Shown piece after piece: positions 2,532-64,000 of a stretch of DNA of 64,000 nucleotides. Numbering within the stretch: the stretch's first letter is position 1; each line of letters opens with the position of its first letter. The stretch is from Azolla caroliniana (taxonomy: Eukaryota > Plantae > Polypodiophyta): NCBI GenBank assembly GCA_043228905.1, contig JBHGNT010000012.1:20460001-20524000 (forward strand). The letters run 5' to 3'. The notes beneath the pieces were generated by a model. It was not told the origin of the DNA, ran no database searches, and worked only from the letters and a program-made list of their open reading frames with translations. The position numbers and the translations under genes are program-made.

Positions 2532-3989
2532 TCACACTCTTCGTTGAAGCAGGAAGTCTAAACAGTCCAGGTTCACCTCACAACCTTTCTTCACAAGGCA
2601 TGGACGAGAAGAATCTGCCATGAAACCTCGCTCTGCTTCACCGTCACCTTTTTCTTCTTCTTGATTTCTCTTATAAGCTTGCTGTCCAGAGCCTCTGACA
2701 GTTATCCATTTATTACCCTCAGGAATCTGTACAGGAGGCGGAGAAGAAGAGGTAGGAGAATTTGAATCAATCACAGGCTTTGGTGGCGTATTCTTATGAA
2801 CAAGGCGCCATCGTTCAAAACTAGAGCAGTATTCTACCATCGAATAGTCTCCTCGCTCATGATCTGATTCACCATCGCTCAGATCAAGAAAACTAAGAGT
2901 GCTTCTGGGAGAAGGTTGAGGAACCTGCAATTCACTACAGAACGACTGAGTATCTAGTGAAGGTTCATCATCATTTCTAGTAAGAAAAGGGTGTTCAAGA
3001 AGCTGAGATGCTGTCCATCTCTGGTTAGAATCTCTGTGTAGGCATTTAGACAAGAAATCTCTGCATTCTTCTGAGAGAGAATGAGGAAGAGGAGGATTGT
3101 CCTGAGAACATGCGATTTTGAAGAGGAGAGATTCGAAAGATGCCAAGGGATTGATCTTCTGAGAAGAACTACTAGATAAGAGCATCCATGGCGAACATCC
3201 TTGCAGCATCTCCACCACAGTGCAACCTAGCGACCAGATATCAGAAGGAAAGCTTTGTTCCACACCTTGCAGAACCTCAGGAGCCATCCACAATGGCGTT
3301 CCTCTCATAATCATGGCAGGAGAGTTATATACAGGCTTTTCTTCTGTTAAATCTTCTGTAGAAGCAAACGAGCAAGGTTTCCGTTTCCGTTCTTGATGAT
3401 GATAATGACGGTTATGGTGTTCCGATTGCTTCTTGGCTGAACCAAAATCTGCAATCTTGACAGAAGAACCCGATCCGATCAGAATGTTCTGTCCTTTGAT
3501 GTCGCAATGCACGATTTCTTGGCTATGGAGGTAAGCTAGGCCTTCAACGATGTCTCTGGTGAAGCGTCGAACTCGCCATTCTTCTAAGCTCCCGCCCGAT
3601 TTCTTCACCAATGCTGCAACGCTGCCACCTTCCATGTATTCTAGGAAGAGATTCGAGGAGCTATCGCTTCCGAAGCAGGAGATGATGCGAGGAGATCTGA
3701 GGCTTCGTAGGATGGAGAGCTCTGCCTTTATGGCGAGAATCTCAGGAGAAGAAGAAGAACGTTGTGATGGAGATGGAGACGAAGAATCAGAAGGTAGTTC
3801 TTCTAGGTTATTAATGGATTTGACAGCGAAGAAGTGTCCATTGTCCAGATTGATGGCGAGGGAGACACGTCCAAAGGAGCCATATCCAAGAGGTGAGAGA
3901 CGAATCCATCGTCTGATCTTCATGGGAGAAGACTCGATGGTATTCTTCGCAGTGGAAGCTTCCATGGCGTCGTAGGGGGAGGTCATCAT
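2532..3989 (-). CDS. Mitogen-activated protein kinase kinase kinase, intronless MEKK-type (MAPKKK15-21/17/18-like)
   Basis: Complete kinase motifs LGYGSFG, FAVKS, HCDIKGQNIL, DFG, GTPLWMAPE and DIWSLGCTVVEM, plus C-terminal SPRS and WITVR motifs typical of this clade. First ATG at 3989; the ORF track start at 4004 is GTG. Confidence 0.93.
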   Translation of the reverse strand: MMTSPYDAMEASTAKNTIESSPMKIRRWIRLSPLGYGSFGRVSLAINLDNGHFFAVKSINNLEELPSDSSSPSPSQRSSSSPEILAIKAELSILRSLRSPRIISCFGSDSSSNLFLEYMEGGSVAALVKKSGGSLEEWRVRRFTRDIVEGLAYLHSQEIVHCDIKGQNILIGSGSSVKIADFGSAKKQSEHHNRHYHHQERKRKPCSFASTEDLTEEKPVYNSPAMIMRGTPLWMAPEVLQGVEQSFPSDIWSLGCTVVEMLQGCSPWMLLSSSSSQKINPLASFESLLFKIACSQDNPPLPHSLSEECRDFLSKCLHRDSNQRWTASQLLEHPFLTRNDDEPSLDTQSFCSELQVPQPSPRSTLSFLDLSDGESDHERGDYSMVEYCSSFERWRLVHKNTPPKPVIDSNSPTSSSPPPVQIPEGNKWITVRGSGQQAYKRNQEEEKGDGEAERGFMADSSRPCLVKKGCEVNLDCLDFLLQRRV

Positions 3990-4180
3990 AACAACAGAAT
4001 TCACAAAATAGAGGAGAAAAAAAAGAGAAAACAGAAGAGGAAGTGAGGATTAGGGCATGGGAGATGGAGGAGGAGATCGATCGATCAGTTATCAGAGATT
4101 TACCAGAGAATGAAGAAACGATCTGCAGACACAAAATCAATGAGGCCGAAGGAGGGTTTTTGAAGACAGTCCCGCATTTC

Positions 4181-6042: not shown

Positions 6043-6764
6043 GGGGTTATGGGTCAATATTGGCCTCTCTATAGACGCTAAAAATATCTATCTATCTAAT
6101 ATATTTGTGTCCTAAGCGCATGAACCAGTTGGCCATATACCTGAACAGCCCCAATCTTCTCATATGTTGATTCTTTGAACTTTGCCCTTACTATACCATT
6201 CCTCTCATCCGTACAACAGAGAACCGAATGTAGAAAGCCTCATGTCCCTCGTATTTTTACAAGCCCGACGATCGTCAATGCATCGTTTATTGTTGGTCCT
6301 AGAAGATGACATTGAATGGTCCTATAGATTAATAAGTAACATGGGAACAAGCCGCAAGCCGCGTGATGTATTGTTTGGCGACATGTGTTCACGACCACAT
6401 GCTCGGTTACATTCGAGAAGCCAAGACGCCGAAGGAAGCGTGGGAAAACCTACGAAAGATTTTCGCCGCCAACACGACCGCGAGGAAGCTTCAACTCCAC
6501 CAAGAGTTAAACAACATTCAACAAAGGGATATGTCTATCATGACATACACCTTGAAGATCAAGGAGCTTTGTGACTCGCTCGGCTCAATAAGCGTAAGTA
6601 TAGATGATGATGAGATGGTGCAAATATGCCTCGGCGGCCTCGCACCACGGTTAGGCGCGATGCGAACCGCCGTTCTAGCACGGGAGAAATCTCCCTCCTT
6701 CTTCGAGCTCCAATCAATGTTATTAGTCGAAGAAAACCACGTGCGTGCAAGGAGCAATGAGTCG

Positions 6765-8328
6765 GAAGGCCACATGCTCTACACGCACTCTAATGGAGGA
6801 AGAGGGCGCGGACGACCTACGCACTCTAATGGAGGAAGAGGGCGTGGACGAGCGGCCAAGGACAAGGCAGACGAGGTCCGACCTACGACAACAACTCCCA
6901 ATTTCGGCCGCAAAACGAAGGCCAACGAGGAACCTTCGCAAGAAGGGGGAGCTTCCACTCCGGCCCGAGCCGTCAAAACGCAACCGAATACAGATATTGC
7001 GGAAAGTTCGGCCACCACGAAGAAGAGTGCCGAAAGAAGATGCGTGAATCGGCTTCCACAAGCCGACAACTCACGAATTACGGAGGAAGGCCACATGCTC
7101 TACACGCACTCTAATGGAGGAAGAGGGCGCGGACGAGCGGCCAAGGACAAGGCAGACGAGGTCCGACCTACGACAACAACTCCCAATTTCGGCCGCAAAA
7201 CGAAGGCCAACGAGGAACCTTCGCAAGAAGGGGGAGCTTCCACTCCGGCCCGAGCCGTCAAAACGCAACCGAATACAGATATTGCGGAAAGTTCGGCCAC
7301 CACGAAGAAGAGTGCCGAAAGAAGATGCGTGAATCGGCTTCCACAAGCCGACAACTCACGAATTACGGAGGAAGGCCACATGCTCTACACGCACTCTAAT
7401 GGAGGAAGAGGGCGCGGACGACCTACGCACTCTAATGGAGGAAGAGGGCGCGGACGAGCGGCCAAGGACAAGGCAGACGAGGTCCGACCTACGACAACAA
7501 CTCCCAATTTCGGCCGCAAAACGAAGGCCAACGAGGAACCTTCGCAAGAAGGGGGAGCTTCCACTCCGGCCCGAGCCGTCAAAACGCAACCGAATACAGA
7601 TATTGCGGAAAGTTCGGCCACCACGAAGAAGAGTGCCGAAAGAAGATGCGTGAATCGGCTTCCACAAGCCGACAACTCACGAATTACGGAGGAAGGCCAC
7701 ATGCTCTACACGCACTCTAATGGAGGAAGAGGGCGCGGACGACCTACGCACTCTAATGGAGGAAGAGGGCGCGGACGAGCGGCCAAGGACAAGGCAGACG
7801 AGGTCCGACCTACGACAACAACTCCCAATTTCGGCCGCAAAACGAAGGCCAACGAGGAACCTTCGCAAGAAGGGGGAGCTTCCACTCCGGCCCGAGCCGT
7901 CAAAACACAACCGAATACAGATATTGCGGAAAGTTCGGCCACCACGAAGAAGAGTGCCGAAAGAAGATGCGTGAATCGGCTTCCACAAGCCGACAACTCA
8001 CGAATTACGGAGGAAGGCCACATGCTCTACACGCACTCTAATGGAGGAAGAGGGCGGACGACCTACGCACTCTAATGGAGGAAGAGGGCGCAGACGAGCG
8101 GCCAAGGACAAGGCAGACGAGGTCCGACCTACGACAACAACTCCCAATTTCGGCCGCAAAACGAAGGCCAACAAGGAACCTTCGCAAGAAGGGGGAGCTT
8201 CCACTCTGGCCCAAGCCGTCAAAACGCAACCGAATACAGATATTGCGGAAAGTTCGGCCACCACGAAGAAGAGTGCCGAAAGAAGATGCGTGAATCGGCT
8301 TCCACAAGCCGACAACTCACGAATTACG
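6765..8328 (+). repeat. Five near-identical tandem copies (321/285/321/321/~310 bp) of the gag nucleocapsid segment
   Basis: Anchor CACATGCTCTACACG at 6771, 7092, 7377, 7698 and 8019. A nested 36-bp sub-repeat is absent from copy 2. Confidence 0.97.
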
Positions 8329-40173: not shown

Positions 40174-40911
40174 CTAAGGGAAGGTACAAGTAGCATTGCA
40201 TGCGGCGTGGAAATCGGCGACGATGGGCCGACAAAGAAGCTGGTAGCACCAGAACATGATAATTGAGGAGATAAGGATGACGGTGACGAAGACAACAATG
40301 TCGAAAGCGTAGTTTCGGAGCACGTAAAGTAGGCGAAGGTGCAATGGCGTATCGGTTCCAAGAAGAATAACGTTGCTCGACGATAGAATGTCTAGAGGCT
40401 CGTTGGATGGGTTGGAGATGTCAAGTAGTGCACCATGGGTCATGATCTTATCGATCGCGGTCAAGATCGCATCGACCTCTCCATTTATTTGGTCTAGCTC
40501 CCAATGGCGGTAGTGGAGTCGTCGGAGCTTGGGGACAAGGGACACAAGTGTGACTATCGTGGTGGTGAGCGAGATCATGAACGGAACCCACCATCGTTCG
40601 CACCCGAGGGCCGTGTTGGACTGCACGAGGGCCGTCAAAACTATCCCTTGAAAGACCGAAAAGAGGGATAGGAATTGGTAGATTTGTTGTTGCGTCGAAC
40701 TCAAGTCTTGAAGCTTCCGGTGCCTTCGGCACCACAACTTCTGCTCCTCCTTCCGGTACCTCTCGAGCCATGACCGGTGACACTTGCTCGCGCAAAGCTC
40801 CGCTAGGACAACCATCTTCGGCCTCCTCTCCACCATCGCTATATGGACCAATACATCATCGCCATGGGTGCTTGACACATTCTCGAGGTCCATTGTAAAG
40901 TGTTGATCCAT
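40174..40911 (-). CDS. Intronless membrane protein of unknown function (helix, 2 TM, helix, TM); resembles an uncharacterised plant family with an IYQ..xFxVFQG...C..WWxP signature
   Basis: Uninterrupted 245 codons from ATG 40911 (frame open to 40995). GC/CpG-rich island in AT-rich DNA. Three hydrophobic segments. An upstream exon is possible. Confidence 0.8.
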   Translation of the reverse strand: MDQHFTMDLENVSSTHGDDVLVHIAMVERRPKMVVLAELCASKCHRSWLERYRKEEQKLWCRRHRKLQDLSSTQQQIYQFLSLFSVFQGIVLTALVQSNTALGCERWWVPFMISLTTTIVTLVSLVPKLRRLHYRHWELDQINGEVDAILTAIDKIMTHGALLDISNPSNEPLDILSSSNVILLGTDTPLHLRLLYVLRNYAFDIVVFVTVILISSIIMFWCYQLLCRPIVADFHAACNATCTFP

Positions 40912-42666
40912 GAACCTAGGCTCGATCGATGACTTCTCTCGTTTAAATTCGTCTTCACTTCCTTGGGATGGCTTCTTAAACCTTACTCTAGCCACACTTG
41001 AGATAAATATTTTCCCATCTCTTTTCTTTTAAGTTTTAACCATTTATTCTTCACACATTGAATTGTACTACTCTTAGAGACCCCATCGATAGTAAAGAAA
41101 AAGGAGCCACGACATGTGCCTTTAATTTATTCTTTTATTACCCGACAATGTGATTACCACTTTGACACAATTTTGCTACATCATGTATCGTTTATCATTT
41201 TTCTAAATTGCTTGCCACATCATATCCATTCAAGAGGGGGTTAACAAACTCAAGGTACAAAACCACCTCAACTATGACAAGGTTCTATCTTTTATCTTTT
41301 CTTCCTTGGTATGTTTATTACAACAATATGATAAAGTTGAGTTTCCAAATCCCAAAATATTGTTCTTGTTTGCTGTAACTACGTAGGAGGCACCTCAAAC
41401 ATAACATATGGAACCAATTGTAATAAGATAGTCTCCTCTAATAGGGTAGAAGTTCCATGTAATTATCGTAAGATTATCCCTCATGTGCTTAAGTAGAAAC
41501 CACACATATTTACTGAAAATATTCTTCATATGCTTAAGTAGAGAGTGGACTCATGTACTACACTACATATCTTGATGTTTCACTAGAGACTGGGGCTTCT
41601 GTGTTTGACTTGGCTAGCTTGTGCACCATTGATGCATACAATAATTGATGGTGGGAAGAATTGTTGATGTTCAATGGTTTGACGAATCCTAGTAGAAATG
41701 TTCCTCATCCTCAATCTCATTATTATCATAGAGCATATATAAGTAGTTTGATCTCGGTAATTCTCTACAAGGGCTTTGCTTTCCACCATGTTCATATTGT
41801 CGAAGGTATACATGGCCAAGTGTTTATTATAATTTTCTATGAAAGTGCACAAATACCCACATTTTAATACATTTGCAAGAAATTTAGGTTATATGATCAT
41901 CCTCCATTGATTGCCCTAATCATAACAATATAAATGATTAGGACCAAACTTTCGATAAAGATACTAATAATAAATTGTCTACTTATTCCCTTGGTTATGC
42001 TGAACATAATGCATTTGTGTATGAGAAGTATCTACACTATCTTCCTATGAAGTAAGATGTTAGTTCTAGGTCACATACTATGTTGACATTAAAAATTAAA
42101 TTGTTTAGCTAATGTTTAGTGTTTGGGCAAAACGTGAAAAAGATGTGTACTACTAGGCATTGCTAGTACCAACTAGTTAGGTCCAATGTATTCATATTGC
42201 TTGGCAACAAAATGGATGAAAAACTTATACTTCCACTAAATTTTCATGTGGTAACAATGGAGAAAGCATTTTAGACAATAACTTGGCATATTTCAATCTT
42301 GAACTTTTATCACATTAGTAATCCTAGGTAATTGTCACATACGTATAGAGATCAATGAAGATAGTTGGAAATAATCTATCCAAGTATGTTTCCAATTGCC
42401 TTTATTACTAATGCAATGAACTAGATAGCCCAAAGTTTTTCGGGTGAATATAGTCTTGTAGTGTGACAATATATATACATACATTTTGAACTTTGACCTA
42501 CTAGGCTTGAGACTTGGAGAAATCTCAAGAAAATACTTTATTCTATAGTAAATTTCAATTGATTACGATGACATTTTGAAAGATTCCAATGTAAACAATT
42601 TAACTCAATGCAAAATTATCTTTATTAATAGATCAATCAATATAATATCAAAATGAAAGAAGAAAA

Positions 42667-45600
42667 CTATGTCTCCCCAATGAGAGCTTCTTCTAATGTA
42701 TCTATCTCAGTAGTAGCATGATGTGCATTCCGAGATAGTATGTAAGAATCAATCACAGTGAGCACATACACCCCTATCCATATGACCAAAGTCCCAACAA
42801 AATATTCTATTCCGACTGGGCAGGACAAAGCAAAGATGAAGAGGACAATTCCAAACACCATCAATAGCGCCCCTGCATGAAAATAAATTTGCTTTCAACA
42901 ATGATCATGTAACATTGAAGCATAGGAAATTATATTTCCTTGTAATGTAAGTTCTATCTTGAGCTTTTGCAAGAATTAAGACAATGGTAAATGTTCACAA
43001 ATGCTAGTTAGAAATTATGACACATACATACTATTCTTGTGATAACTTGCAATCACTTGAAATTCTTGTAAACCAAAGTGATTTCAAAAATAGAGATAAT
43101 GGCAAGTGGGCATGAAAGCAACAACAATGCATATAAATATAAAAAGGCAAATTTGGACCTATAAGTAAGAACTTGCATAATGTGGTTTGATGTACACAAA
43201 ATTGTTGAAGCAAACAAAATCAAACATGCATAGAAAGTGGAACAACTTCTTGACTAATGCATGTCATGCTTGAGTAATTAAATGGAAGGATGAAGGCTTA
43301 TTTACCCGATCGTCCATGAATTCTTCTCCAATGGTGTGGTTGATGGTTTTGGAAGAAGATTGGAACTCCAATTGAGGAATTGGGATCCACGTACTTAACA
43401 AAATAGAAAGAACCAAGTTTTTAAAGTAATATTGGATTAAAAAACAAAAGGTAATCGTTATGTTTTGAAGTACTAAAATACGAGGGACAGTTAAATATGA
43501 AAAAAGTACGAGAAACCCTCACATTTATCTCTAGAGATTGGAGATTTTTTGGGATGTAGAAGATATCTCACATGTTTGAGATTTACAAGATGCCCCACAT
43601 TTTGAAAAGTCTCACACTTCATGTTACAAAATGCCCACATAAAATTTACCATATGAACATGTCTTGTCCCATAAAGCATGCATTACATTAATTTACATAT
43701 TTGGAATTTTGTGCAAGCACTTTGTAGTGACAACATTGAATGATTTTACTCATGCATATAATTGACTACATTTATCCACTTTTCTAAGCCTTCAAAAACT
43801 CGACTTGTTACAATCCACATACATATTTAATATTGAAGGTGACTGTAGTTACACATATTTATATCATTATAGTTTATCACATTTGTAGTGCTATTTATTT
43901 CTATATTTTATACATTGAATTCTAGTCAAATGATTTGTGCATACCTGGAGATTGTAGCCAAGCCAAATGAGAATTCTAGTCAAATGATTCGTGCATACCT
44001 GGAGATTGTAGCCAAGCCAAATGAGAGCCCAAATGGCAATGTTGGTGGTGAAGACTCGTGGAAGAAAGTCATTAGAGTCACTAATGGCCGATGGGATGAT
44101 GACCAATACAAAGACCATAAAAATCAGCACACCAGGTAAGGCGATGATGTTGGCCACAGCATAAGAAGACTCCCCACTAAAAAAAACACTTGATAATAAG
44201 TGTTTAGCCTCCATAAAAAATTTCAACATTTCCGTTATTAGGAAACACGTCCACACTCATGGTTTTGGATAATAATGCGAGAATAATGTTTATCATCAAC
44301 AAGTGTGTGTCCAAAAGGTACCCCATGCTTAGCTAGATGTGGATGGATGAAGAGGTCTTATACACTAAGATTTTAGTGTTTTCTTTTCCTTGTGAAAAGG
44401 AAGCCTTGTTTTTATCGTGTACTTCACCATATCACATAGATGAAATGTGCCATATCAAGTTAATACAAATTGTAGTCATTCTAGGACTCTAACCTTGCAT
44501 GTCAAAATCATTATTCATGGTTATCATCACAAAGTTTTTGTAATACATATTGGTGTAATTATTCTATGAACCTCATCTATTCTTATCTTATGTAACCATA
44601 GACCTACCTTGTAATGCCTATTGAGACTCAAATTGAAAGCTTCATATCAATCCATACATTGTTTTTATCTCATACACCTATAAGAATGGTGTCTAACATA
44701 CTGTAATTTCTCAAATAAAAAGCTTCTCGTTAAACCATACATTATTTTTTTATCTTACATGACCACGTTTGCTGTGACTTTTAGCTACTTCCTTCAATGT
44801 TTTACAAAGAATATAAACACTCACCTTGAAAATCTATGGCTAAGTAAGAGGATGTCACACTTAGTTATGTGATGAAATTTAAGAAAGAAGGAACCATTGC
44901 CATTCTAGGATTGAAACCTTGTAGGTCAAATTCATGGATATCATCATCATGTTTAACCAATTATGATATGCATGTGGGTGCAATGATCGACATACCACAT
45001 TTTAGATGTTCTTCCATGCCTAGTTTCATGTAGTATGGAGCAAAGACACCTAGCTTATAATACGTTTTTAACTATGTGTGAGAGGATTTCATTTATATAA
45101 AATATTCTAACACATCGAGGATTTTTACTCATGGAAAGAGGTTAACAAGCCATGTATGAAAAATGGTCGCGAAATTTCGCACCATATTGTTTTATATCAA
45201 AATATGTCACCTTGGTATAATATAATGGATGAGATTGGAGAGATTTTTTCCAGCTTTAGTACAAGGCAATGAACTCTATATGATGATTAAGTACCTATCT
45301 ATATATTACTCAAAAAACTACACTACCATAGAATGGGATGATTCTCATGCTTAAACTGACATTGTTAATATTATTTTAGATACAAAATTGAGAGAGTCTT
45401 ATTCTTCCTTCAAAGCTTTGGAAATTTGTTAAAAACAAATCATTGTAGGATTTGGCAACAACAACCCATTATGTAGTAGTGTTAGTGATTGGCCTACATA
45501 ATTGAGTACATGAATTACCTTTGGGCCTTTAGCTTGGGATCATGGCATGCCACTTGGTACATTACATATGGTATCACAAGTTGGAGGAATGGGAATACCA

Positions 45601-45840
45601 ATAGTCCTACCCATCTTGGTACCCACACAATTGGGTGACCTACACCATATCATTAGGTCCACAAGATTAGCTTGTTGAAAGAAATTAAAGAATATAATGG
45701 ATAACTAGCAAGATCTTGTACATACCAAAGGCGCTCCACCATAGGGGTAAAGAATCCGAGGTATTCTCCCAATTGTATATAGCAAGGATTAAGCTTGTGA
45801 TTGTGAGTAGAAGAGGAAGAGCAACTGGATTATTAGCCAT
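42667..45840 (-). CDS. Five-exon gene for a 235-aa six-TM DUF1648/SdpI-like membrane protein; exons 45840-45726, 45639-45519, 44176-43999, 43393-43306, 42872-42667
   Basis: All four introns are GT..AG with matching phases (1,2,0,1) and the spliced frame has no stops. Product: MANNPVALPLLLTITSLILAIYNWENTSDSLPLWWSAFGHPIVWVPRWVGLLVFPFLQLVIPYVMYQVACHDPKLKAQSGESSYAVANIIALPGVLIFMVFVLVIIPSAISDSNDFLPRVFTTNIAIWALIWLGYNLQYVDPNSSIGVPIFFQNHQPHHWRRIHGRSGALLMVFGIVLFIFALSCPVGIEYFVGTLVIWIGVYVLTVIDSYILSRNAHHATTEIDTLEEALIGET*. Confidence 0.85.
43917..44025. repeat. 54-bp tandem duplication spanning the exon 3 splice donor
   Basis: gaattctagtcaaatgatt(t/c)gtgcatacctggagattgtagccaagccaaatga twice, 1 mismatch. 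Confidence 0.97.
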
Positions 45841-50551: not shown

Positions 50552-53500
50552 TGTTGGGAGACAGGTCCCTCCGGATGGGAAGGGAGAAGAACAGTGCCGA
50601 TGAACAAACTCGGCCGAGGCCGAAACTGTATGAGGAGGACCCGGCTACGGAGAGCCGGATGGTGCAGGCCCGGTGTAAACCGGATGAGGAGTACCCGGCT
50701 ACGGAGAGCCGGATGGTGCAGGCCCGGTATAAACCAGATGAGGAGTACTCGGCTACGGAGAGCCGGATGGTGCAGGCCCGGTATGAACCGGATGAGGAGT
50801 ACTCGGCTACGGAGAGCCGGATGGTGCAGGCCCGGTGTGAACCAGATGAGGAGTACCCGGCTACGGAGAGCCGGATGACACAGACCCGGTACGAACCGGA
50901 GGAAGAGACATATTCGTAAATATGTTTCTGAGAGCCCATCGAGGCTACATTTGTAAATAGCCGAAAAGTCATATTAGTATAAATATGACTTAGGGCAAAC
51001 TTTTAGTTGTTGTCATTTTTTTTTCTTTGTTGGTGCAAGAAGAAGAGAGAGCACGTAATAGTGTACAGAGAGAGAGAGAAAGAGAAAGAGGTCGTTGCCT
51101 CTGTTGTAACTGCCGCGTGTGGCGAAGATCTGTGAGCACGAGGTCGTTGCCTCAGTGAACTCACTGTTGTACATTCTCACATAGTGACAGTTTGCAGCCT
51201 GTGGGCTGCCGTGGTTTTTCCCTCTTTGGGTTTTCCACGTAAACCTCCTGCGTATCTTCCTCTCCTTTGTGTCGTGTTTTATTTCCCGTTTTCTGTGTAT
51301 CATTCTACGCTCAGTTGTGGCTGAGCGTTGCGCATAAGGAACGTCGGGTTCCTGTCAAGTGGTATCAGAGCGAAATCGACACAGAAAATGGACGAATCGT
51401 TTGGCGGCATGTTCAAGCTCACCGGCTCCAACTATTCAGTGTGGAAGTCGAAGATGAGGGACATGCTCGTGGTTAAAGACCTCTGGTTGCCGGTTCAGTT
51501 CGGGGACAAGAGACCGGACAAAATCGACGCCGCAATATGGGAGGTGATGCACATGAAGACAACGGCGTACATACGGTGCTTCATCAACATGAGCCTGTAC
51601 AACAACTTCAATGAAGAGAGCAAGGCTCATGAGGTCTGGGAGAAGATCGGCATAATGTTTCAAAACAAAAATGTTGTCAATTAGGTGTCGGTATTCCGGA
51701 AGCTAGTAAGACTCCGGTACCAAGATGGCTCCAGCATGGCGGAGCATATGAATGCCTTCCAGGGGCTGATACACCAGGCAACGTCATTGGAAGTACCTCT
51801 TGCCGATGAGGTACTAGCGCTACTCCTGCTCGGTTCCCTCCCGGATAGCTGGGAGACGTTGGTTGTCACTTTGGGCAACGCCGGGCCAGAAGGAAAACGG
51901 TTATCCCTAACAAGAGTAAAGTCGAGCTTGCTAGATGAGGAGGCGCGTCGGAAAGACAAAGATGCGAGCTCCGACTCCAAAGCGCTTCTTTCCGAATCGG
52001 AACGCGGAAGACATAGAAACCGTAGTCCCCAGAACCGGGAGAAGTCGGGGACATGGTCAAAGTCAAGGGGGAGGCCTACTTGCTTCTATTGCGGCAAGCC
52101 GGGACACTTCCAAAAGAACTGTCGGCATTTCCGTAAAGACAAGGAAACCGACGGTACCGATTCGAAGCAAACCCCGAACCGTAACGGTAAAGACCGGAAG
52201 GGGCCGGACCGGAAGGGAACGACGTCAATCGCGGCAAGTGAAGAGGAGTTGATGCTCATCACCGAGGAGAGTGAGATAAACCTTACCGACGACGAGATGA
52301 CCTGGGTGGTAGACTCCGGAGCATCGTTCCACCTTACCCCGGACCGGAAATGCTTCTCATCGTACTCAGCCGGTGATCACGGCTGTGTCCGGATGGGGAA
52401 TGAAGGTACATGCCGAATTGTCGGCATAGGAGACGTGTGGCTGACAACACCAACTGGATGCAAGATGCTGCTAAAGGATGTCCGACACGTTCCGGAAGTT
52501 CGTCTGAACCTGATATCAGCCGGTCGGCTAGATGATGAAGGCTACACGGGTAGCATCCAGAATGGTGTCATGAAGTTCAGCAAAGGGAGCCTGATTGTGG
52601 CTCGGGCCCGGAAGGTAAACACACTATACCTGATGAATGCCCGGTTATGTCCGGAAGAAGTGAACGTGGCATCCGACACTACCGGTGAGCTGTGGCACAA
52701 AAGGCTGTGTCATATCAGCGAGAAGGGGATGAAGAGGCTTGCAGACGACAACCTCATTCCAGTGAAGAACGTGCACTTGGAGAAGTGCACTGATTGTCTG
52801 GCCGGTAAGCATAACCGGACCTCCTTCCGACCAAGGCCACCGATGAGACATAATGCACCACTGGAGTTGGTGCATACGGATGTGTGTCAAGTAGACATGA
52901 AGTCACATGCCGAAGCGCAGTACTTCGTGACGTTCATAGATGACCACAGCTGGAAGCTGTGGGCCACACCGCTGAAGACGAAGGATCAGGTGTTATCCGT
53001 CTTCAAAGAGCTCCACGCGAGAGTGGAAAGAGAAACTGGCCGGAAGCTGAAGACGATTCGAGCAGACAACGGAGGAGAATACCGGGGGCAGTTCGAGGAG
53101 TACTGCCGCTCAAAGGGAATCCGGCTCGAATTTACCGTGCCGAAGAGACCGGAACTAAACGGACTGGCCGAGAGGATGAACCGGACCATAATGGAGAGGG
53201 TCCGGAGTATGCTAGCGCATGCAAAACTACCCAAGAAGTTTTGGGCTGAGGCACTGTCGACGGCGACATACGTGATAAATAGATCACCCTCAGTACCCTT
53301 GGACGGAGACACGCCACAGAGAGTGTGGACCGGTAAGGAAGTATCCTACCGGCATCTGAAGGTGTTCGGGTGTCTCGCGTACGTGCATGTAGCTAAGGAC
53401 CGGAGAGGAAAGCTAGATCCAAAGACCCGGCCATGCATATTCCTCGGTTACGGTGACGATGAGTTCGGCTACCGAGTGTGGGACCCGGTCGACAAGAAGG

Positions 53501-55956
53501 TATTCCGGAGTCGAGATATTATCTTCATGGAGAACAAGTCGCTCGCCGACTGGGAGTTGGAGAAGAAGATAATGAACTCCGAGTCGACCGGTAAGGATAG
53601 ACTCTACGATGAGCAGACCCAACCGGCAAGAGACTAGTTAGCACTCGAGGAACCAGCCGGTTACGGTGAGGATACCGAACCGGCAGATGAAGAGGTAGAG
53701 GAAGCTGAGACCGGAACCGGCCAAGACTCTGAATCGGATTTGGATGAAGAGAAAATGGAGGAGCCGGTTACCGAAGCCCGAAGACGGAGATATCCTCTCA
53801 GAGAGAGAAGGCCCCCCCGGAGATTTCCGGATGCAGAGCATGTTTTGCTGACCGATGAGGGGGAGCCGGAAAGCTTCGAAGAAGTGAAGGAAGACACCCA
53901 CAGCCGAAAATGGTTAAGTGCCATGCACGATGAGATGGATTCCCTGCATGAGAACCATACGTACGAATTGGTGGAGTTGCCGAAAGGAAAGCGGGCACTC
54001 CGAAACAAGTGGGTGTACAAGTTGAAACCGGGAGATGCCGGCAACCCCCCGAGATACAAAGCCAGGATCGTGGTGAAGGGGTTCCAGCAGAAGAAGGGCG
54101 TGGACTTCGACGAGATATTTGCCCCGGTAGTAAAGATGACCTCCATCCGGACGGTGCTGAGTATAGCAGTAAGCATGGACCTCGAGGTAGAGTAGCTGGA
54201 AGTGAAGACGACATTCCTTCATGGCGACCTCGAAGAGGAGATCTACATGCAGTAACCGGAAGGATTTGTGGAGAAAGGGAAGGAGCACCTGGCATGCCGG
54301 TTGAAGAAGAGCCTGTACGGACTGAAGCAGGCTCCCCGGCAATGGTACCGGAAGTTCGACTCCTTCATGACCGATCAAGGGTACCACAAGACGCAGGCCG
54401 ATCACTGCGTGTTTGTGAAGAAGTTCGAAGGAGGGGACTTCCTGATATGCCTCCTGTACGTGGATGACATGTTGATCGTCGGACGAGACCAAGGCAAAAT
54501 ACGGATGCTGAAGAAGGCTCTCAACCGGACCTTCTCAATGAAAGACTTGGGTCCGGCAAGACAGATGTTGGGGATGCACATCATTCGGGACCGGTCAGTG
54601 AAGCAATTATGGTTGTCACAGGAGAAGTATGTGACAAAGGTGCTTCACCGGTTCAACATGTTAGAAGCAAAACCGGTCGGATTGACACTTCCGGCAAACT
54701 GCAAGCTGTCCGGTAACCAAAGCCCGAAGACGAAAGCAGAGAAGGCGGATATGATGAAGATTCCATATGCCTCTGCCGTCGGGAGCTTGATGTCCGCAAT
54801 GGTCTGTACCCGACCGGACATTGGATACACAGTCGGAGTGGTGAGCCGGTTTATGAGCAATCCCGGCAAGGAGCATTGGAACGTGGTCAAGTGGATACTC
54901 TGGTATTTGAAGGGCACTTCAAATATGTGTCTCCGATTCGGCTCCGGAAAACCTCAACTGGACGGTTTCACCGATTCGGACATGTTGGCTGATGTGGATA
55001 CCAGCCGGTCTACATCCGGGTATGTAATGACATATGTAGGGGGAGCTGTTTCGTGGCAGTCGAGGCTGCAGAAGACGGTTGCATTGTCAACCACAGAGGC
55101 GGAGTACATGGCGGCTGTGGAAGCCGGCAAGGAAATATTATGGATGAAGGACTTCATCGGAGAGCTCGGTATCCGGCAAGAGGAATACCGACTCTATTGC
55201 GACAGTCAAAGTGCCATCCACCTTTCTAAGAATGCGGCCTACCATTCTCGGATGAAGCATATCCATCGGAGGTATCACTGGATCCGGGAAAGAGTAGATG
55301 ACCAGGAGTTCGCACTGACGAAGATCCACACGGCCGAGAACGGGTCAGATATGCTGACCAAAGTGCTGACACCCGACAAGCTGGACGCATGCCGGAAGAG
55401 GATCGGACTGGTAAGACACCCCATGCCGGAGTGAAGGGGGAGTTTGTTGGGAGACAGGTCCCTCCGGATGGGAAGGTAGAAGAACAATGCCGATGAACAA
55501 ACTCGGCCAAGGCCGAAACCGTATGAGGAGGACCTGGCTACGGAGAGTCGGATGGTGCAGGCCCGGTATAAACCGGATGAGGAGTACCCGGCTACGGAGA
55601 GCCGGATGGTGCAGGCCCGGTATAAACCGGATGAGGAGTACTCGGCTACGGAGAGCCGGATGGTGCAGGCCCGGTATGAACCGGATGAGGAGTACTCGGC
55701 TACGGAGAGCCGGATGGTGCAGGCCCGGTGTGAACCAGATGAGGAGTACCCGGCTACGGAGAGCCGGATGACGCAGACCCGGTACGAACCAGAGGAAGAG
55801 ACATATTCGTAAATATGTTTCTGAGAGCCCATCGAGGCTACATTTGTAAATAGCCGAAAAGTCATATTAGTATAAATATGACTTAGGGCAAACTTTTAGT
55901 TGTTGTCATTTTTTTTTCTTTGTTGGTGCAAGAAGAAGAGAGAGCACATAATAGTG

Positions 55957-59520: not shown

Positions 59521-62500
59521 TGTCATGATATGGCAAGACTCGAACCCATGACCTTAGGTTATATGGGTCGAGCTCTTGACCATTACATCATCTATTGTAA
59601 TACGTAAGATATTATTTTCATTTACATTTTATTATAGGAAATTAGTGTATATTCCAGATTTCTCTGGAACATTCTAGAAGCTTCAGGATTACTCCTGAAA
59701 ACACTATAAAAGAGGGCACTAGGCATTATGTTGAACCAAATTGGTTCAACGCCAGTCTTAAGCCTTTTAGCCACCATTGTATATTCTCTTCATATAATAC
59801 ATATCTTTCTTATCATCACTCTCTCTCTCTCAATCTCTCTCTTTCTCTCTGTCTCGCTCACTTCTTCCTTCTCTCGAAGAAGTTCCGCACCTCTCATAGT
59901 ACTAATCCTTCGTTTAGTACTAATTCCTTCTCTGTCTCAGTACTGTTCATGACAGTTTGAACCAAATTTCCCTACCTTCTGTCTCTCTCATTTCCTACTA
60001 ATCTTTTATTCCTCTTTTCTTTCATCCCATGGCCACTGTTAGCGCCGAAGAATATCAATCTGTTTTCTCGGAATTTCAATGCTTGAAGGAGAAGTTCCAT
60101 GCTTTGGAATAAGAAAACCAACGGTTGCTGGGAGATCTTCAACAAATCTCCTTAGAAAAGCAGCAAACGCAACAACAACATGGGGAACTTGCGTTACACG
60201 TGCAACAACTCGAAGCAACCATCGTAGCGATGCAACAACAAGGGCCCGGAACACAAGGGATTAATAAAGAACCCAAGATTGGCCTTCCCACGAAGTTCGA
60301 TGGAACGCCATCGCAGTTTAGAGGGTTCCTTAACCAGGTACGATTAGTTATTCAAATGCATCCTTCCCGATATCCCACCGATGCATCACGAGTGGGTTTA
60401 GTAGGCACTTTGTTAAGTGGCTCAGCGTTGTCATGGTTCGCTCCACTATTAGAAAAGGAATCTCCGTTACTCAACAATTTTGAAGAGTTTCTAGGTGAGT
60501 TTAAAGCATGTTTCGGAGATACTGACAGCATCAGGACCGCAATCAACAAAATCCGGCGATTACGCCAAGGTGACCGTCCAGCCTCAGCATACGCTGCAGA
60601 TTTTCGCCTACTCGTCGCCGATATCCCTTGGGATGATCAAGCGTTGATGGAGCAATTCCGTTATGGTTTACGCAACGACGTCAAGGATTTACTATTGACC
60701 TTCCCCGAAGAGCCAAAGTCCTTAACAGAAGCAATCAGTCGCACGGTGAGATGTGACAACCGCCTCTTTGAGCGACGTTCGGAACGACAACTACAGATGC
60801 CGAGGGCAAGATCAGAGCCCACCTACGCCTCAATGGTAGCAATACCTTTTCCGAGGGAGTCATATAATGCGCCTCCAGCGAATACTCCGACTCCGATGGA
60901 GATTGACACTACACGTCGTCGAGGGCCGTTATCCGAAGAAGAAAAGCAGCGATGCCGTACAAATCGACTATGTCTTTACTGCGATGGACCAGGACATATC
61001 GCAATAAATTGCCCCCATAGGCCAAGAAGACAGGTAAACCAAATAGTCGCTAGTTTTAATTGTACTAAATCCGAGCCTATTTCAGTAGGGATATCTGATA
61101 GTCCTAATAGTACTAATAGTACTAATATCCCAGATCTAGCAAACAAATTTGATGTCCTTAGTCAGTTAGAAGAAGAGTTAAACGACTAAGTCCAGCCAAA
61201 ATAGGAGCCGTTTGGTTGGACAGCCCTAGATCTGTGCAACCCATTAGTGGTTCCATTCCCTCTAAGCAAGTTAGTGATGTGTTCGTAGCCCAAGTAATAG
61301 TTAGTACTAAAAGTACCCCTCCAGTACATGTCCTAGCACTCCTAGATTCCGGAGCTAACTCTTGCTTTATGGATAAGGAATTTGCTCAAGCTCATAAGAT
61401 ATCCCTAAGAAAACTCCAGTGTCCAGCCTCTGTAGTAGTCATTGATGGACGTCCCATTGCTTCCGGAAATATCATAGAAGAGTCAGAGCCCATTAATATT
61501 GTCCTAGATAACTTAGCATGTGTAGTATCATTTAATATTATTAGTATCCCAGAACATCCTATAGTTTTAGGATTACCGTGGTTCGAGTTACATAACCCAT
61601 ACATAGATTGGAGAACAAGAGAAATCCGGTGTCGACAAACCCAAGGGTCAACTCAGAAGATGGCAACCATTTCGCTACGTCAGTTGCGTAAAGAAGGGCG
61701 CAAGGAGGAAATGTTCCTCTTTGCAATATCAGTAAACCCCTCCAGCACCACTAAAGAAGAATCCACCGTTCAACTTCCCGAGAAGTATCGTCATTACGCC
61801 GATGTGTTCGATAAAGTACAAGCCAACACACTTCCTCATCATCGACCGTACGATTGCCCCATCGATTTACAACCGGGAAAAGAGCCGCCATGGGGACCGA
61901 TCTACAATTTGTCAACAACCGAGCTGGAAGTCCTTCGGGCCTATATAGAGGAGAATTTGGAAAATGGTTTCATTCGGCATTCGAAATCTCCAGCCGGCGC
62001 GCCCATTTTCTTCGTCAAAAAAAAAGATTGATCGCTTCGTCTCGTTGTAGATTACCGTGGCTTGAATAAGGTTACAATCAAGAATATGTATGCTCTTCCC
62101 CTTATCTCAAGTCTTTTGGAACGGATCAATGGTGCCAGGTTCTTCACGAAGATCGACTTACAGGGAGCATATAACCTCATACGGATCCGACCAGGAGACG
62201 AATGGAAGACTGCGTTTTGCACCAGATATGGGCACTTCGAGTATACGGTCATGCCGTTCGGCCTCACTAATGTGCCGGTAGTCTTCCAGCACATGGCTAA
62301 TGATATATTCCGAGATCTATTGGATGATTGTTTGATCATCTATTTGGATGATCTACTGGTTTATTCAAAGACCCAAGAAGAACATGATTCTCATGTACTA
62401 TTAGTACTAAAACAATTTCGAGAACATGGTCTGTATGCAAAGCTGGAAAAATGTAGTTTCGGGTGCAACCAAGTGGAATTTCTCGGCTACATCATTTCGT

Positions 62501-64000
62501 CAGAAGGCATCTCCATGGACCCAGCTAAGGTCAAAACGGTGGTAGAATGGCAGACTCCGCGTTCGGTGTGGGATGTGCAATGCTTCTTAGGCTTTGCCAA
62601 TTTTTACCGGAAGTTCATACAAGATTACTCAAAGATCGTTCTACCTCTCACACAACTGACCAGGAAGGGACAACCGTTCATCTGGTCTGAAGAAACGGAC
62701 ATGGCTTTCGAGAGTCTTAAAAAGGCATTTACATCGGCTCCAATTCTAGCTCATGTCGATCCGGAAAAACCATTCATTATCGAAGCTGACACATCGGATT
62801 TTGCATTGAGGAGCATTCTGTCACAACAGGGGAATGATGAGAAGCTACATCCTGTGGCTTTTCACTCACGCAAGTTTGATACCGCCGAAATCAACTACGA
62901 AATTCATGATAAGGAGCTATTGGCAATAGTGGATTCTTTTATGCAATTCAGGCATTTTCTGGAGGGATCCTCTCATCCAGTCACCGTATTTAGTGACCAC
63001 AAGAATCTTGCCTACTTTCAGGATGCTCGTGTGTTGAATCGACGTCAAGCTCGGTGGGCCCACTTCCTCACGCGTTTCGACTTCAAAATTACATGTCGTC
63101 CGGGGAGGCACCAAGGGAAGGCAGATGCATTATCACGGCATTCGTATCTAGCACCCCGTCCCGGCGAGCCAGCTTTCGATAACCAAAAACAAGTCATCTT
63201 GGGACCGACACGACTACAAGCAACACAGATCTTTGACATGCCTATGGATTCCCGCGTTATTGATACCATATGTGAAGACTTGAAGACAGATGCGTTAGCC
63301 CAAGCTATACTAGCACAAATTGATCCCTCTCGAGTGTCGTGTTCACAGTCGCAACCACCAGGTACGGATTATCGGCAATTCAAATACCATGATGGATTAC
63401 TCTTCTTTAAAGAACTTTTGTATGTTCCTAATGGTTCTTGCCGCCTTTGAGTAGTACAAAACTGTCATGACACATATACAACTGGGCATTTTGGTAGTAC
63501 TAAAACATTAAATGTAGTACAACGAACATTCTGGTGGCCCTGTATGCGACAATTTGTCGAGGATTTTGTTCGGACTTGTGATACATGTTGCAGAGCGAAA
63601 ATGCCAATGCATCATCCATATGATTTATTAGAACCATTACCAATTCCAAGCAAGCCGTGGCAATCCATTGCTCTAGACTTCATCACAGATCTTGCAGTCT
63701 CTAAGGGGTTCAATGCGATTCTAACGGTGGTGGATCGATATACGAAGATGGCTCATTTCTTGCCATGTACTAAGGAGATCTCCAATGAAGACACTGCCGA
63801 AATTGTCATGCGTGAAGTATGTCGGCATCATGGACTTCCCGATAGTATCATCAACGACCGTGGACCCCAGTTCGTGTCAAAATTCTGGAAGCACCTTTTT
63901 AACATGCTCAAGGTCACTTGTAACCTCTCCTCCGGCTACCACCCACAAACTGACGGCCAAGCTGAACGAACAAATCAAACGTTGGAGCAGTATCTGCGGT
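59521..64000 (+). mobile_element. Ty3/gypsy retrotransposon (Tcn1/Tf1-like chromovirus type), running off the right edge: 5' LTR 59521-59954, gag 60029-61189, pol from ~61190
   Basis: LTR TGTCATGA...TCATGACA. Gag PTKFDG, LRQG, PTPMEID and CLYCDGPGHIAINC. Pol LLDSGAN, EWKTAF, MPFGL, YLDDLL, YEIHDKELLA, HHCC integrase and GYHPQTDGQAER. Premature stops in gag, at 62029 and at 63448. Confidence 0.96.

Follow-up and report, generated by a model that had tools for sequence, protein, structure and literature searches.

A five-exon gene of the SdpI/DUF1648 family in the fern Azolla caroliniana: expression, family membership and a probable prokaryotic origin

How does a fern come to carry a gene for a protein that resembles a bacterial toxin-immunity protein, and what might such a protein do in a plant? 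The question is raised by a gene on the minus strand of a 64,000-nucleotide stretch of the Azolla caroliniana genome (GenBank assembly GCA_043228905.1, contig JBHGNT010000012.1, positions 20,460,001 to 20,524,000), hereafter the window, in which it occupies positions 42667-45840. An initial annotation, made from the DNA letters, had described it as a plant gene encoding a membrane protein with an N-terminal DUF1648 and a C-terminal SdpI domain, possibly acquired from a prokaryote. In Bacillus subtilis, SdpI has two tasks: it confers immunity to the toxin made from SdpC, and it holds the repressor SdpR at the membrane, with mutations in its first half affecting immunity and those in its second half affecting signalling (Ellermeier et al. 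2006, as related in PMC2910880). We regard as likely an overall account in which the window holds a genuine gene of this family, derived from an ancient transfer into plants and acting by the mechanism proposed below.

The coding sequence consists of five exons totalling 708 nt (235 codons and a stop), arranged with their introns and transmembrane (TM) segments as follows.

45726-45840, minus strand: exon 1, 115 nt, with the ATG at 45840 and 38 codons plus 1 nt; TM1 and the start of motif 1 (SLPLWWSAF)
45640-45725, minus strand: intron 1, 86 nt, GT..AG, phase 1
45519-45639, minus strand: exon 2, 121 nt; the remainder of motif 1, TM2 and a predicted cytosolic HDPK loop
44177-45518, minus strand: intron 2, 1342 nt, GT..AG, phase 2
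43999-44176, minus strand: exon 3, 178 nt; TM3, a predicted acidic outer loop, TM4 and the WLGYNLQ that opens motif 2
43394-43998, minus strand: intron 3, 605 nt, GT..AG, phase 0
43306-43393, minus strand: exon 4, 88 nt; the predicted cytosolic motif-2 loop (PNSSIGVPIFF...HHWRRIHGRS)
42873-43305, minus strand: intron 4, 433 nt, GT..AG, phase 1
42667-42872, minus strand: exon 5, 206 nt with the stop codon (42667-42669) counted in; TM5 and TM6, then an acidic tail at the C-terminus

All four introns are poor in GC (30-32%), each has GT..AG ends, and the phases 1, 2, 0 and 1 fit across every junction. The in-frame translations of the exons reproduce the peptides that the initial annotation had quoted, and hydropathy calculated exon by exon gives the six hydrophobic segments it had proposed for a 235-residue product: one each in exons 1 and 2 and two each in exons 3 and 5, exon 4 being hydrophilic. 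What is said below of the whole protein is built on these single exons and on full-length relatives.

Evidence for transcription comes from the contigs of two public runs from two separate studies (X1 and X2), which were compared with the window gene and are 90-100% identical to the window. All four predicted introns are skipped in these contigs. The joints across intron 2 (44176/45519, in X1 and X2) and intron 3 (43393/43999, in X2) are exact and bear CT..AC ends on the plus strand, and those across intron 4 (42873/43308) and intron 1 (45638/45726), both present in X1 and X2, differ by a single substitution at the border. Genomic DNA would hardly yield contigs without introns, and these contigs are therefore taken as transcript evidence; it counts against this use of them that the run type of X1 and X2 was guessed as RNA. 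The window gene is transcribed and spliced as predicted, and its five-exon structure is far beyond chance.

In the same contigs, exon 3 (compared over 44035-44178) occurs in two forms in both runs, one identical to the window and one with nine differences, and a second allele, a homeologue or a close paralogue is therefore expressed as well. Eight of these nine differences were listed, and six of the eight are synonymous. Over all 17 listed contig variants, nine are synonymous and eight are replacements, against a random expectation of about 75% replacement (binomial p 0.012), which is a weak signal. A further X1 contig, of 240 nt, lies within intron 2 (44222-44449) and differs from the window by a 13-nt insertion and a 1-nt deletion; its source could be RNA before splicing, a transcript arising within the intron or a copy of a repeat located elsewhere. 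The assembly ERZ1034427 of the European Nucleotide Archive (ENA) holds a 1,522-nt contig (NODE_10043) that is 98.9% identical to window positions 42093-43614 and covers exon 4, intron 4, exon 5 and the 3' flank, with three of 64 residues differing in the exon 5 product. This match indicates DNA of the same or a sister fern in that sample.

The border of exon 3 and intron 3 carries a local duplication.

43917-44026, no strand assigned: 54-bp tandem duplication, 2.0 copies, 98% match

The duplicated unit spans the exon border, taking in 26 nt from the end of exon 3 together with the donor site and 28 nt of intron; its second copy lies within intron 3. The second donor, which follows 43945, keeps the reading frame and would lengthen the coding sequence by 18 codons repeating LIWLGYNLQ, and the upstream donor at 43999 is the one used in the spliced contigs. 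An 84-nt contig of X2 (43943-44026) runs through the duplicated donor, as would be possible for pre-mRNA or through use of the second donor. Intron 3 also contains a 27-bp tandem repeat (43547-43605; 2.2 copies, 76% matching).

Relatives of the gene were found in other ferns and in clubmosses. An exhaustive HMMER search with exon 5 gave six matches, among them a full-length protein of Ceratopteris richardii (P0004, 237 residues); two others (P0005 and P0006) proved to be repeat proteins unrelated to the P0004 family. Further relatives were sought by word-indexed searches that took P0004, a fern alignment and a clubmoss protein as starting points. The fern proteins found comprise two from Ceratopteris, two from Adiantum capillus-veneris, one from A. 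nelumboides, a partial one from Pteridium and two derived from transcripts, and the clubmoss proteins comprise three from Diphasiastrum complanatum and one from Selaginella moellendorffii; the same searches also returned a few archaeal and metagenomic "SdpI family" proteins. These orthologues or paralogues, namely Ceratopteris KP509_03G074400 and KP509_32G026800, Adiantum GOP47_0016657 and GOP47_0020942, Diphasiastrum O6H91_06G055600 and Selaginella LOC9640772, match the window gene in length and in five-exon structure, with identical intron positions and phases, and all are annotated by machine only. In ferns the family forms two paralogue groups, each represented in both Ceratopteris and Adiantum, and the window gene is closest to the group of P0008 (a 238-residue fern protein) and KP509_03G.

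Comparison with these relatives bears directly on the gene model. By exon-wise blastp, exons 1 to 5 fall in order on residues 4-39, 41-79, 81-139, 140-168 and 171-237 of P0008, with identities of 69%, 79%, 71%, 55% and 58%, respectively. These colinear matches miss only the split codons, and every junction is thereby independently validated. Across all relatives, identity per exon is 51-79% to ferns (55-62% for exon 4 against the fern proteins) and 28-51% to clubmosses. The intron positions, given as full codons and phase, are as follows.

Azolla window gene: 38/1, 78/2, 138/0, 167/1
Ceratopteris: 40/1, 80/2, 140/0, 169/1
Diphasiastrum: 37/1, 77/2, 137/0, 166/1

Once the N-terminal offsets (+2 in Ceratopteris, -1 in Diphasiastrum) are corrected, all four positions and phases are identical, and the introns therefore predate the split between ferns and clubmosses. 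The lineages have retained the gene for hundreds of millions of years. Against the coding sequence of P0008, and summed per exon, nonsynonymous differences (pN) amount to 0.19 and synonymous differences (pS) to 0.83; the synonymous sites are saturated, and for this reason no dN/dS ratio is given. Replacement changes are clearly held down and the coding sequence is under purifying selection, in keeping with the original proposal that the gene is maintained in the plant. The Ceratopteris counterpart of the 605-nt intron 3 is 15,376 nt long (L001 5383-20758), a length that fits the transposon-driven intron bloat reported for that genome (PMC9477723).

That the window gene is a real member of the SdpI/DUF1648 family is, in our judgement, very probable. 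The DUF1648 profile (PF07853) is matched by all eight fern proteins (best E 1.7e-10) and the SdpI profile (PF13630) by seven of the eight (best E 4.6e-7). At cut-offs of 28.7 bits for DUF1648 and 28.2 bits for SdpI, the four clubmoss proteins clearly pass both (33-44 and 46-52 bits). The features of P0004 place it in the same family from two other directions. By language-model features, bacterial SdpI/DUF1648 clusters make up 28 of its 30 nearest neighbours in the ESM Atlas, and its structure superposes on bacterial clusters carrying both domains with TM scores of 0.78/0.87 over 210 residues and 0.80 over 217. An AlphaFold2 model of P0004 (pLDDT 72.6) shows six long helices with a hairpin between helices 1 and 2, and retrieves bacterial SdpI/DUF1648 families at a TM score of 0.70 over 218 residues. 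At the level of sequence, tblastn with a clubmoss protein against plasmids found Clostridium "SdpI family protein" genes (29-30% identity over 83-88% of the length, E 1e-6), and in blastp against 89 prokaryotic proteins identity rises to 30-35% for the clubmoss copies (some 200 residues aligned, E 5e-20) and to 24-29% for the fern copies.

Four of the five exons of the window gene itself also align with a family profile. In hhalign comparisons with a profile built from prokaryotic proteins only, exon 1 matches columns 13-38 (E 0.015), exon 2 columns 45-78 (E 3.7e-5), exon 4 columns 141-162 (E 0.021) and exon 5 columns 168-212 (E 0.0036); the four are colinear, and the matches of exons 4 and 5 are weak. 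Several points weigh against the assignment. Exon 3 fails to find its place on that profile, and a Pfam scan of the single window exons gave no DUF1648 or SdpI match; the scan is uninformative because the introns split both domains. Membership and fold were scored on full-length orthologues that are 55-79% identical per exon to the window gene, and the fern proteins lie near the Pfam cut-offs: P0004 covers the whole DUF1648 profile (35.8 bits) and falls below the threshold for SdpI (25.9 bits), and P0008 passes for SdpI (30.3 bits) and falls below for DUF1648 (22.1 bits).

Other searches yielded nothing that was kept. The single-exon Pfam scan returned noise (NKAIN, PRA1 and DUF3043, at E 0.1-0.3), and exon 5 on its own, as query for a feature search of the ESM Atlas, matched only unnamed bacterial clusters, all below 0.9, a result that was set aside. 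No family was returned from NCBIfam. The Protein Data Bank (PDB) gave no sequence match and Foldseek none at E<=0.001, and a wide structure search with VIA-align found generic partial helix bundles alone (Z at most 9.2); the family therefore has no solved relative in these searches.

The architecture of the family is that of an N-terminal DUF1648 domain (TM1, a hairpin bearing motif 1, and TM2) followed by a C-terminal SdpI domain (TM4, the motif-2 loop, and TM5-6). In the published survey, the basic type of the SdpI family has six transmembrane segments (TMS); motif 1, [PA][VI]H[WF][NG]ASGE...SKF, lies between TMS1 and TMS2 and is proposed to face outward and bind SdpC, and motif 2, ...LGNY..K..PN..GIRTPWTL....W.KTH...G, lies between TMS4 and TMS5 and is proposed to be cytoplasmic and to capture SdpR (PMC2910880). 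Some clusters of the family are reported without one of the motifs (PMC2910880), and we therefore treat motif 2 as typical, not obligatory.

Both motifs can be followed into the plant proteins. Motif 1 of the window gene, LPLWWSAFGHPIVWVPRWVG, stands at the homologous place, and its P, W, G, P and basic residue align with prokaryotic columns. The replacement of HW by WW had been noticed at the outset. In the mixed alignment this change of H to W (LPLWW) is common to all plant copies, and the motif 1 residues L35, W36, W37, P43, P48, G52 and P57 are invariant in plants. The flanks of motif 2 in the window gene are WLGYNLQYVDPNSSIG and HHWRRIHGRSG, with GVPIFFQN as the core instead of GIRTPWTL. 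Ferns in general keep the flanks WLGYNLQ.V.PN..IG and W...H...G, and the core becomes GVP[IV]F and a variable stretch. The clubmoss motif is almost intact, IGILTPWTLASKTNWQKTHAHAG, with the core GILTPWTL, and the second deviation first noticed, GxRT to GVPI, is accordingly a real change specific to ferns. Six columns are invariant from prokaryotes to plants (D71, G133, N142, G146, W159 and H163 in P0015 numbering), and all of them fall in the TM2-3 and TM4-5 loops. The plant proteins carry in addition an acidic C-terminal tail that is absent from the prokaryotic ones.

In a tblastn search with three SdpR proteins over 80 fetched prokaryotic loci and the plant loci, an SdpR-like gene lay within 1.5 kb in 65 of the 80. 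On plasmids of Clostridium estertheticum, C. butyricum and Staphylococcus arlettae, an sdpR-type autorepressor gene directly precedes the SdpI-family gene, in the following stretches.

L003, 2634-3579: plasmid SdpR/SdpI module
L004, 2642-3573: plasmid SdpR/SdpI module
L005, 1142-2052: plasmid SdpR/SdpI module

This adjacency, in the loci and on the plasmids alike, leads us to regard the prokaryotic subfamily as mostly a two-gene module. No obvious sdpABC toxin operon was seen in the short flanks of the prokaryotic modules. Neither the 64-kb window nor the loci of Ceratopteris and Diphasiastrum gave an SdpR match at E<=1 by tblastn, and the SdpR-sequestering function that the initial annotation had mentioned for bacterial SdpI thus has no partner at these three plant loci.

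We hypothesize the following arrangement for the plant protein. Its N-terminus would lie in the cytosol and the motif-1 hairpin would point toward the outside or a lumen, an orientation that follows the positive-inside rule and the example of B. subtilis SdpI. There the hairpin may bind or neutralise a membrane-active peptide or amphiphile. The motif-2 loop would face the cytosol, where the capture of SdpR would have been lost and another partner is possible; the change from GIRTPWTL to GVP[IV]F in ferns would fit either loss or re-use of the SdpR-capture surface. A role in protection against toxins or peptides, drawn by analogy and akin to the detoxification or sensing of antimicrobial peptides that the initial annotation had put forward, seems to us rather doubtful. 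To our knowledge, function in bacteria has been tested for B. subtilis SdpI and YfhL alone, which speaks against a ready extension of that role to plants.

An alternative of at least the same likelihood, which we consider possible if tentative, is that the plant protein retains a more basic activity of the fold, such as ion or lipid handling or the anchoring of a cytosolic partner, and has no toxin or peptide role. With the same tentative standing, such an activity may reside in the positions that archaea and ferns share without change, namely the D after TM2 and the LG..N, PN..G and W..H..G of the TM4-5 loop. The confinement of all six invariant columns to two loops argues for it, the TM4-5 loop being cytoplasmic according to PMC2910880 and the TM2-3 loop being assigned to the cytosol by the positive-inside rule, and so does the fact that plants without SdpR still keep these residues under selection. 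The family is moreover spread far beyond SDP producers: a scan with an alignment of prokaryotic members found at least 599 matching stretches in prokaryotic genomes of many phyla. (The same kind of scan with the plant alignment gave 23 pattern matches, none of which was confirmed.) However, no enzyme or transporter fold has been recognised, and motif 1 on the predicted outer face is equally strongly conserved in plants, which argues that an outward binding surface is still in use.

The origin of the gene is a separate matter. We lean toward an ancient transfer from a prokaryote to plants before the radiation of vascular plants, followed by loss in seed plants, as a fairly probable reading. On this account a single prokaryotic SdpI-type gene would have entered the nuclear genome by the time of the common ancestor of vascular plants at the latest, would then have gained four introns and the acidic C-terminal tail, and would later have been lost in seed plants. 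Two trees, of 22 and 101 rows, both unite the plant proteins in one clade (100/100; SH-aLRT 100), within which the ferns form one clade (100/100). The plant stem has a length of 2.49 substitutions per site, and its point of attachment, between an archaeal/Chloroflexota group and the remaining bacteria, has a support of only 5. The searches, which included NCBI nr, UniRef and EukProt, returned no seed-plant, bryophyte, algal or other eukaryotic copy.

Three points weigh against this reading. In both trees the plants are nested in no prokaryotic group and have no supported sister, which is why no donor is named and why the case for transfer stands on distribution alone; the prokaryote sample was picked for likeness to a Clostridium protein; and the searches that found no copy in seed plants, bryophytes or algae were word-indexed and limited in their reach. 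The early suggestion of a prokaryote-derived gene therefore holds in part: the distribution, restricted to ferns and clubmosses in those searches with no sign of a broad eukaryotic spread, supports it, and the trees place the plants within no donor group.

The same observations bear on an alternative without late transfer, in which plants inherited the gene long ago, for example from the endosymbiont that became the plastid or the mitochondrion or from the early eukaryote, and it has survived only in ferns and clubmosses after many losses. We consider this unlikely. The very long stem of the plant clade and its lack of nesting in any sampled bacterial group would suit it, as would the great age shown by four common introns and the limited sensitivity of the searches for other eukaryotic copies. 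But no copy came from seed plants, bryophytes, algae or other eukaryotes although the searches extended to archaeal proteins with as little as 25% identity; the 80 genome loci included no conspicuous relative from cyanobacteria; and many independent losses would be required.

The surroundings of the gene include several long ORFs of plant type.

2532-4004, minus strand: protein kinase-domain ORF, 490 aa
14207-16141, minus strand: pentatricopeptide repeat (PPR) ORF, 644 aa
24469-25875, plus strand: CCCH zinc-finger ORF, 468 aa

At least three long terminal repeat (LTR) retrotransposon bodies lie in the window, with copia-type (gag, integrase, RVT_2) and gypsy-type (Ty3 capsid, RVT_1, RNase H) ORFs at 24-1256, 6363-8075, 51685-55434 and 60125-63450. 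The long ORF nearest downstream of the gene (40174-40995, minus strand, 273 aa) has no Pfam match at E<=1e-5. Together, the PPR, kinase and CCCH genes and the copia and gypsy elements mark the window as plant nuclear DNA, not contamination.

That the locus is no working plant gene at all, whether because bacterial DNA contaminated the assembly, because ORFs line up by chance or because a pseudogene is decaying there, is hardly credible: the single exons without Pfam match and the 54-bp duplication at the border of exon 3 and intron 3 could be cited for it, but four canonical introns with all joints in spliced contigs of two runs, an intact frame, a setting among plant nuclear genes and LTR retrotransposons, orthologues that share the introns and lie on fern and clubmoss assemblies of chromosome scale, a pN far below pS, and a duplication that leaves the used donor intact, with no lesions seen, stand against it.

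The plant proteins resemble B. subtilis SdpI and YfhL in length (about 210-240 residues), in their six TM segments, in the order of the two domains and in the placement of the motifs. They differ in being encoded by a nuclear eukaryotic gene with four introns and no adjacent sdpR, in having LPLWW instead of [IV]PxHW in motif 1, in the replacement of the motif-2 core GIRTPWTL by GVP[IV]F in ferns, and in the extra acidic C-terminal tail. Their identity to prokaryotic members is 24-35%, in a compared set that is without B. subtilis SdpI itself. Bacterial transfers have been described before in Ceratopteris and early land plants, in the form of Tma12, aerolysin-like genes and phenolic acid decarboxylases (PMC9477723). 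Like the window gene, these genes are of prokaryotic type, nuclear and expressed, and occur in ferns and/or clubmosses and not in seed plants. In their case, however, trees place the plant genes among bacteria, whereas here the tree resolves no donor, and their products are soluble toxins or enzymes, unlike the polytopic membrane protein of immunity and signalling type described here. SdpI and DUF1648 are absent from the main text of that study, including its section on bacterial transfers.

Fern and clubmoss orthologues are already labelled "DUF1648 domain-containing protein" or "uncharacterized protein", and so the gene is not hidden from databases; as to whether it had been described, our literature search found no paper on SdpI or DUF1648 proteins in plants. 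The sole dedicated survey found treats a bacterial and archaeal immunity and signalling family and leaves eukaryotes unmentioned (PMC2910880). The gene belongs to a branch of the SdpI family that is found in plants and shows some variant features.

The finding adds a polytopic membrane protein of immunity type to the prokaryote-derived genes of seed-free vascular plants. It also provides a natural experiment on the fold without SdpR, in which conservation all the way from archaea to ferns shows which parts of the protein matter. Ceratopteris can be transformed, and the function is thus open to experiment. We further speculate, as an unlikely but far-reaching possibility, that the ancestor of vascular plants captured a bacterial toxin-immunity protein and that ferns and clubmosses have for over 400 million years relied on it at the cell surface, to ward off or to sense the membrane-active peptides of soil and endophytic bacteria, the cytosolic loop of the protein having been rewired in ferns to a new partner other than SdpR; if true, this would be a component of plant defence without a counterpart in seed plants. 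Should protection of the membrane against bacterial peptides not be its role, the gene would be a well-documented and ordinary candidate for ancient transfer, and should it prove true, it would bear on the interactions of plants with microbes and on the loss of the gene in seed plants.

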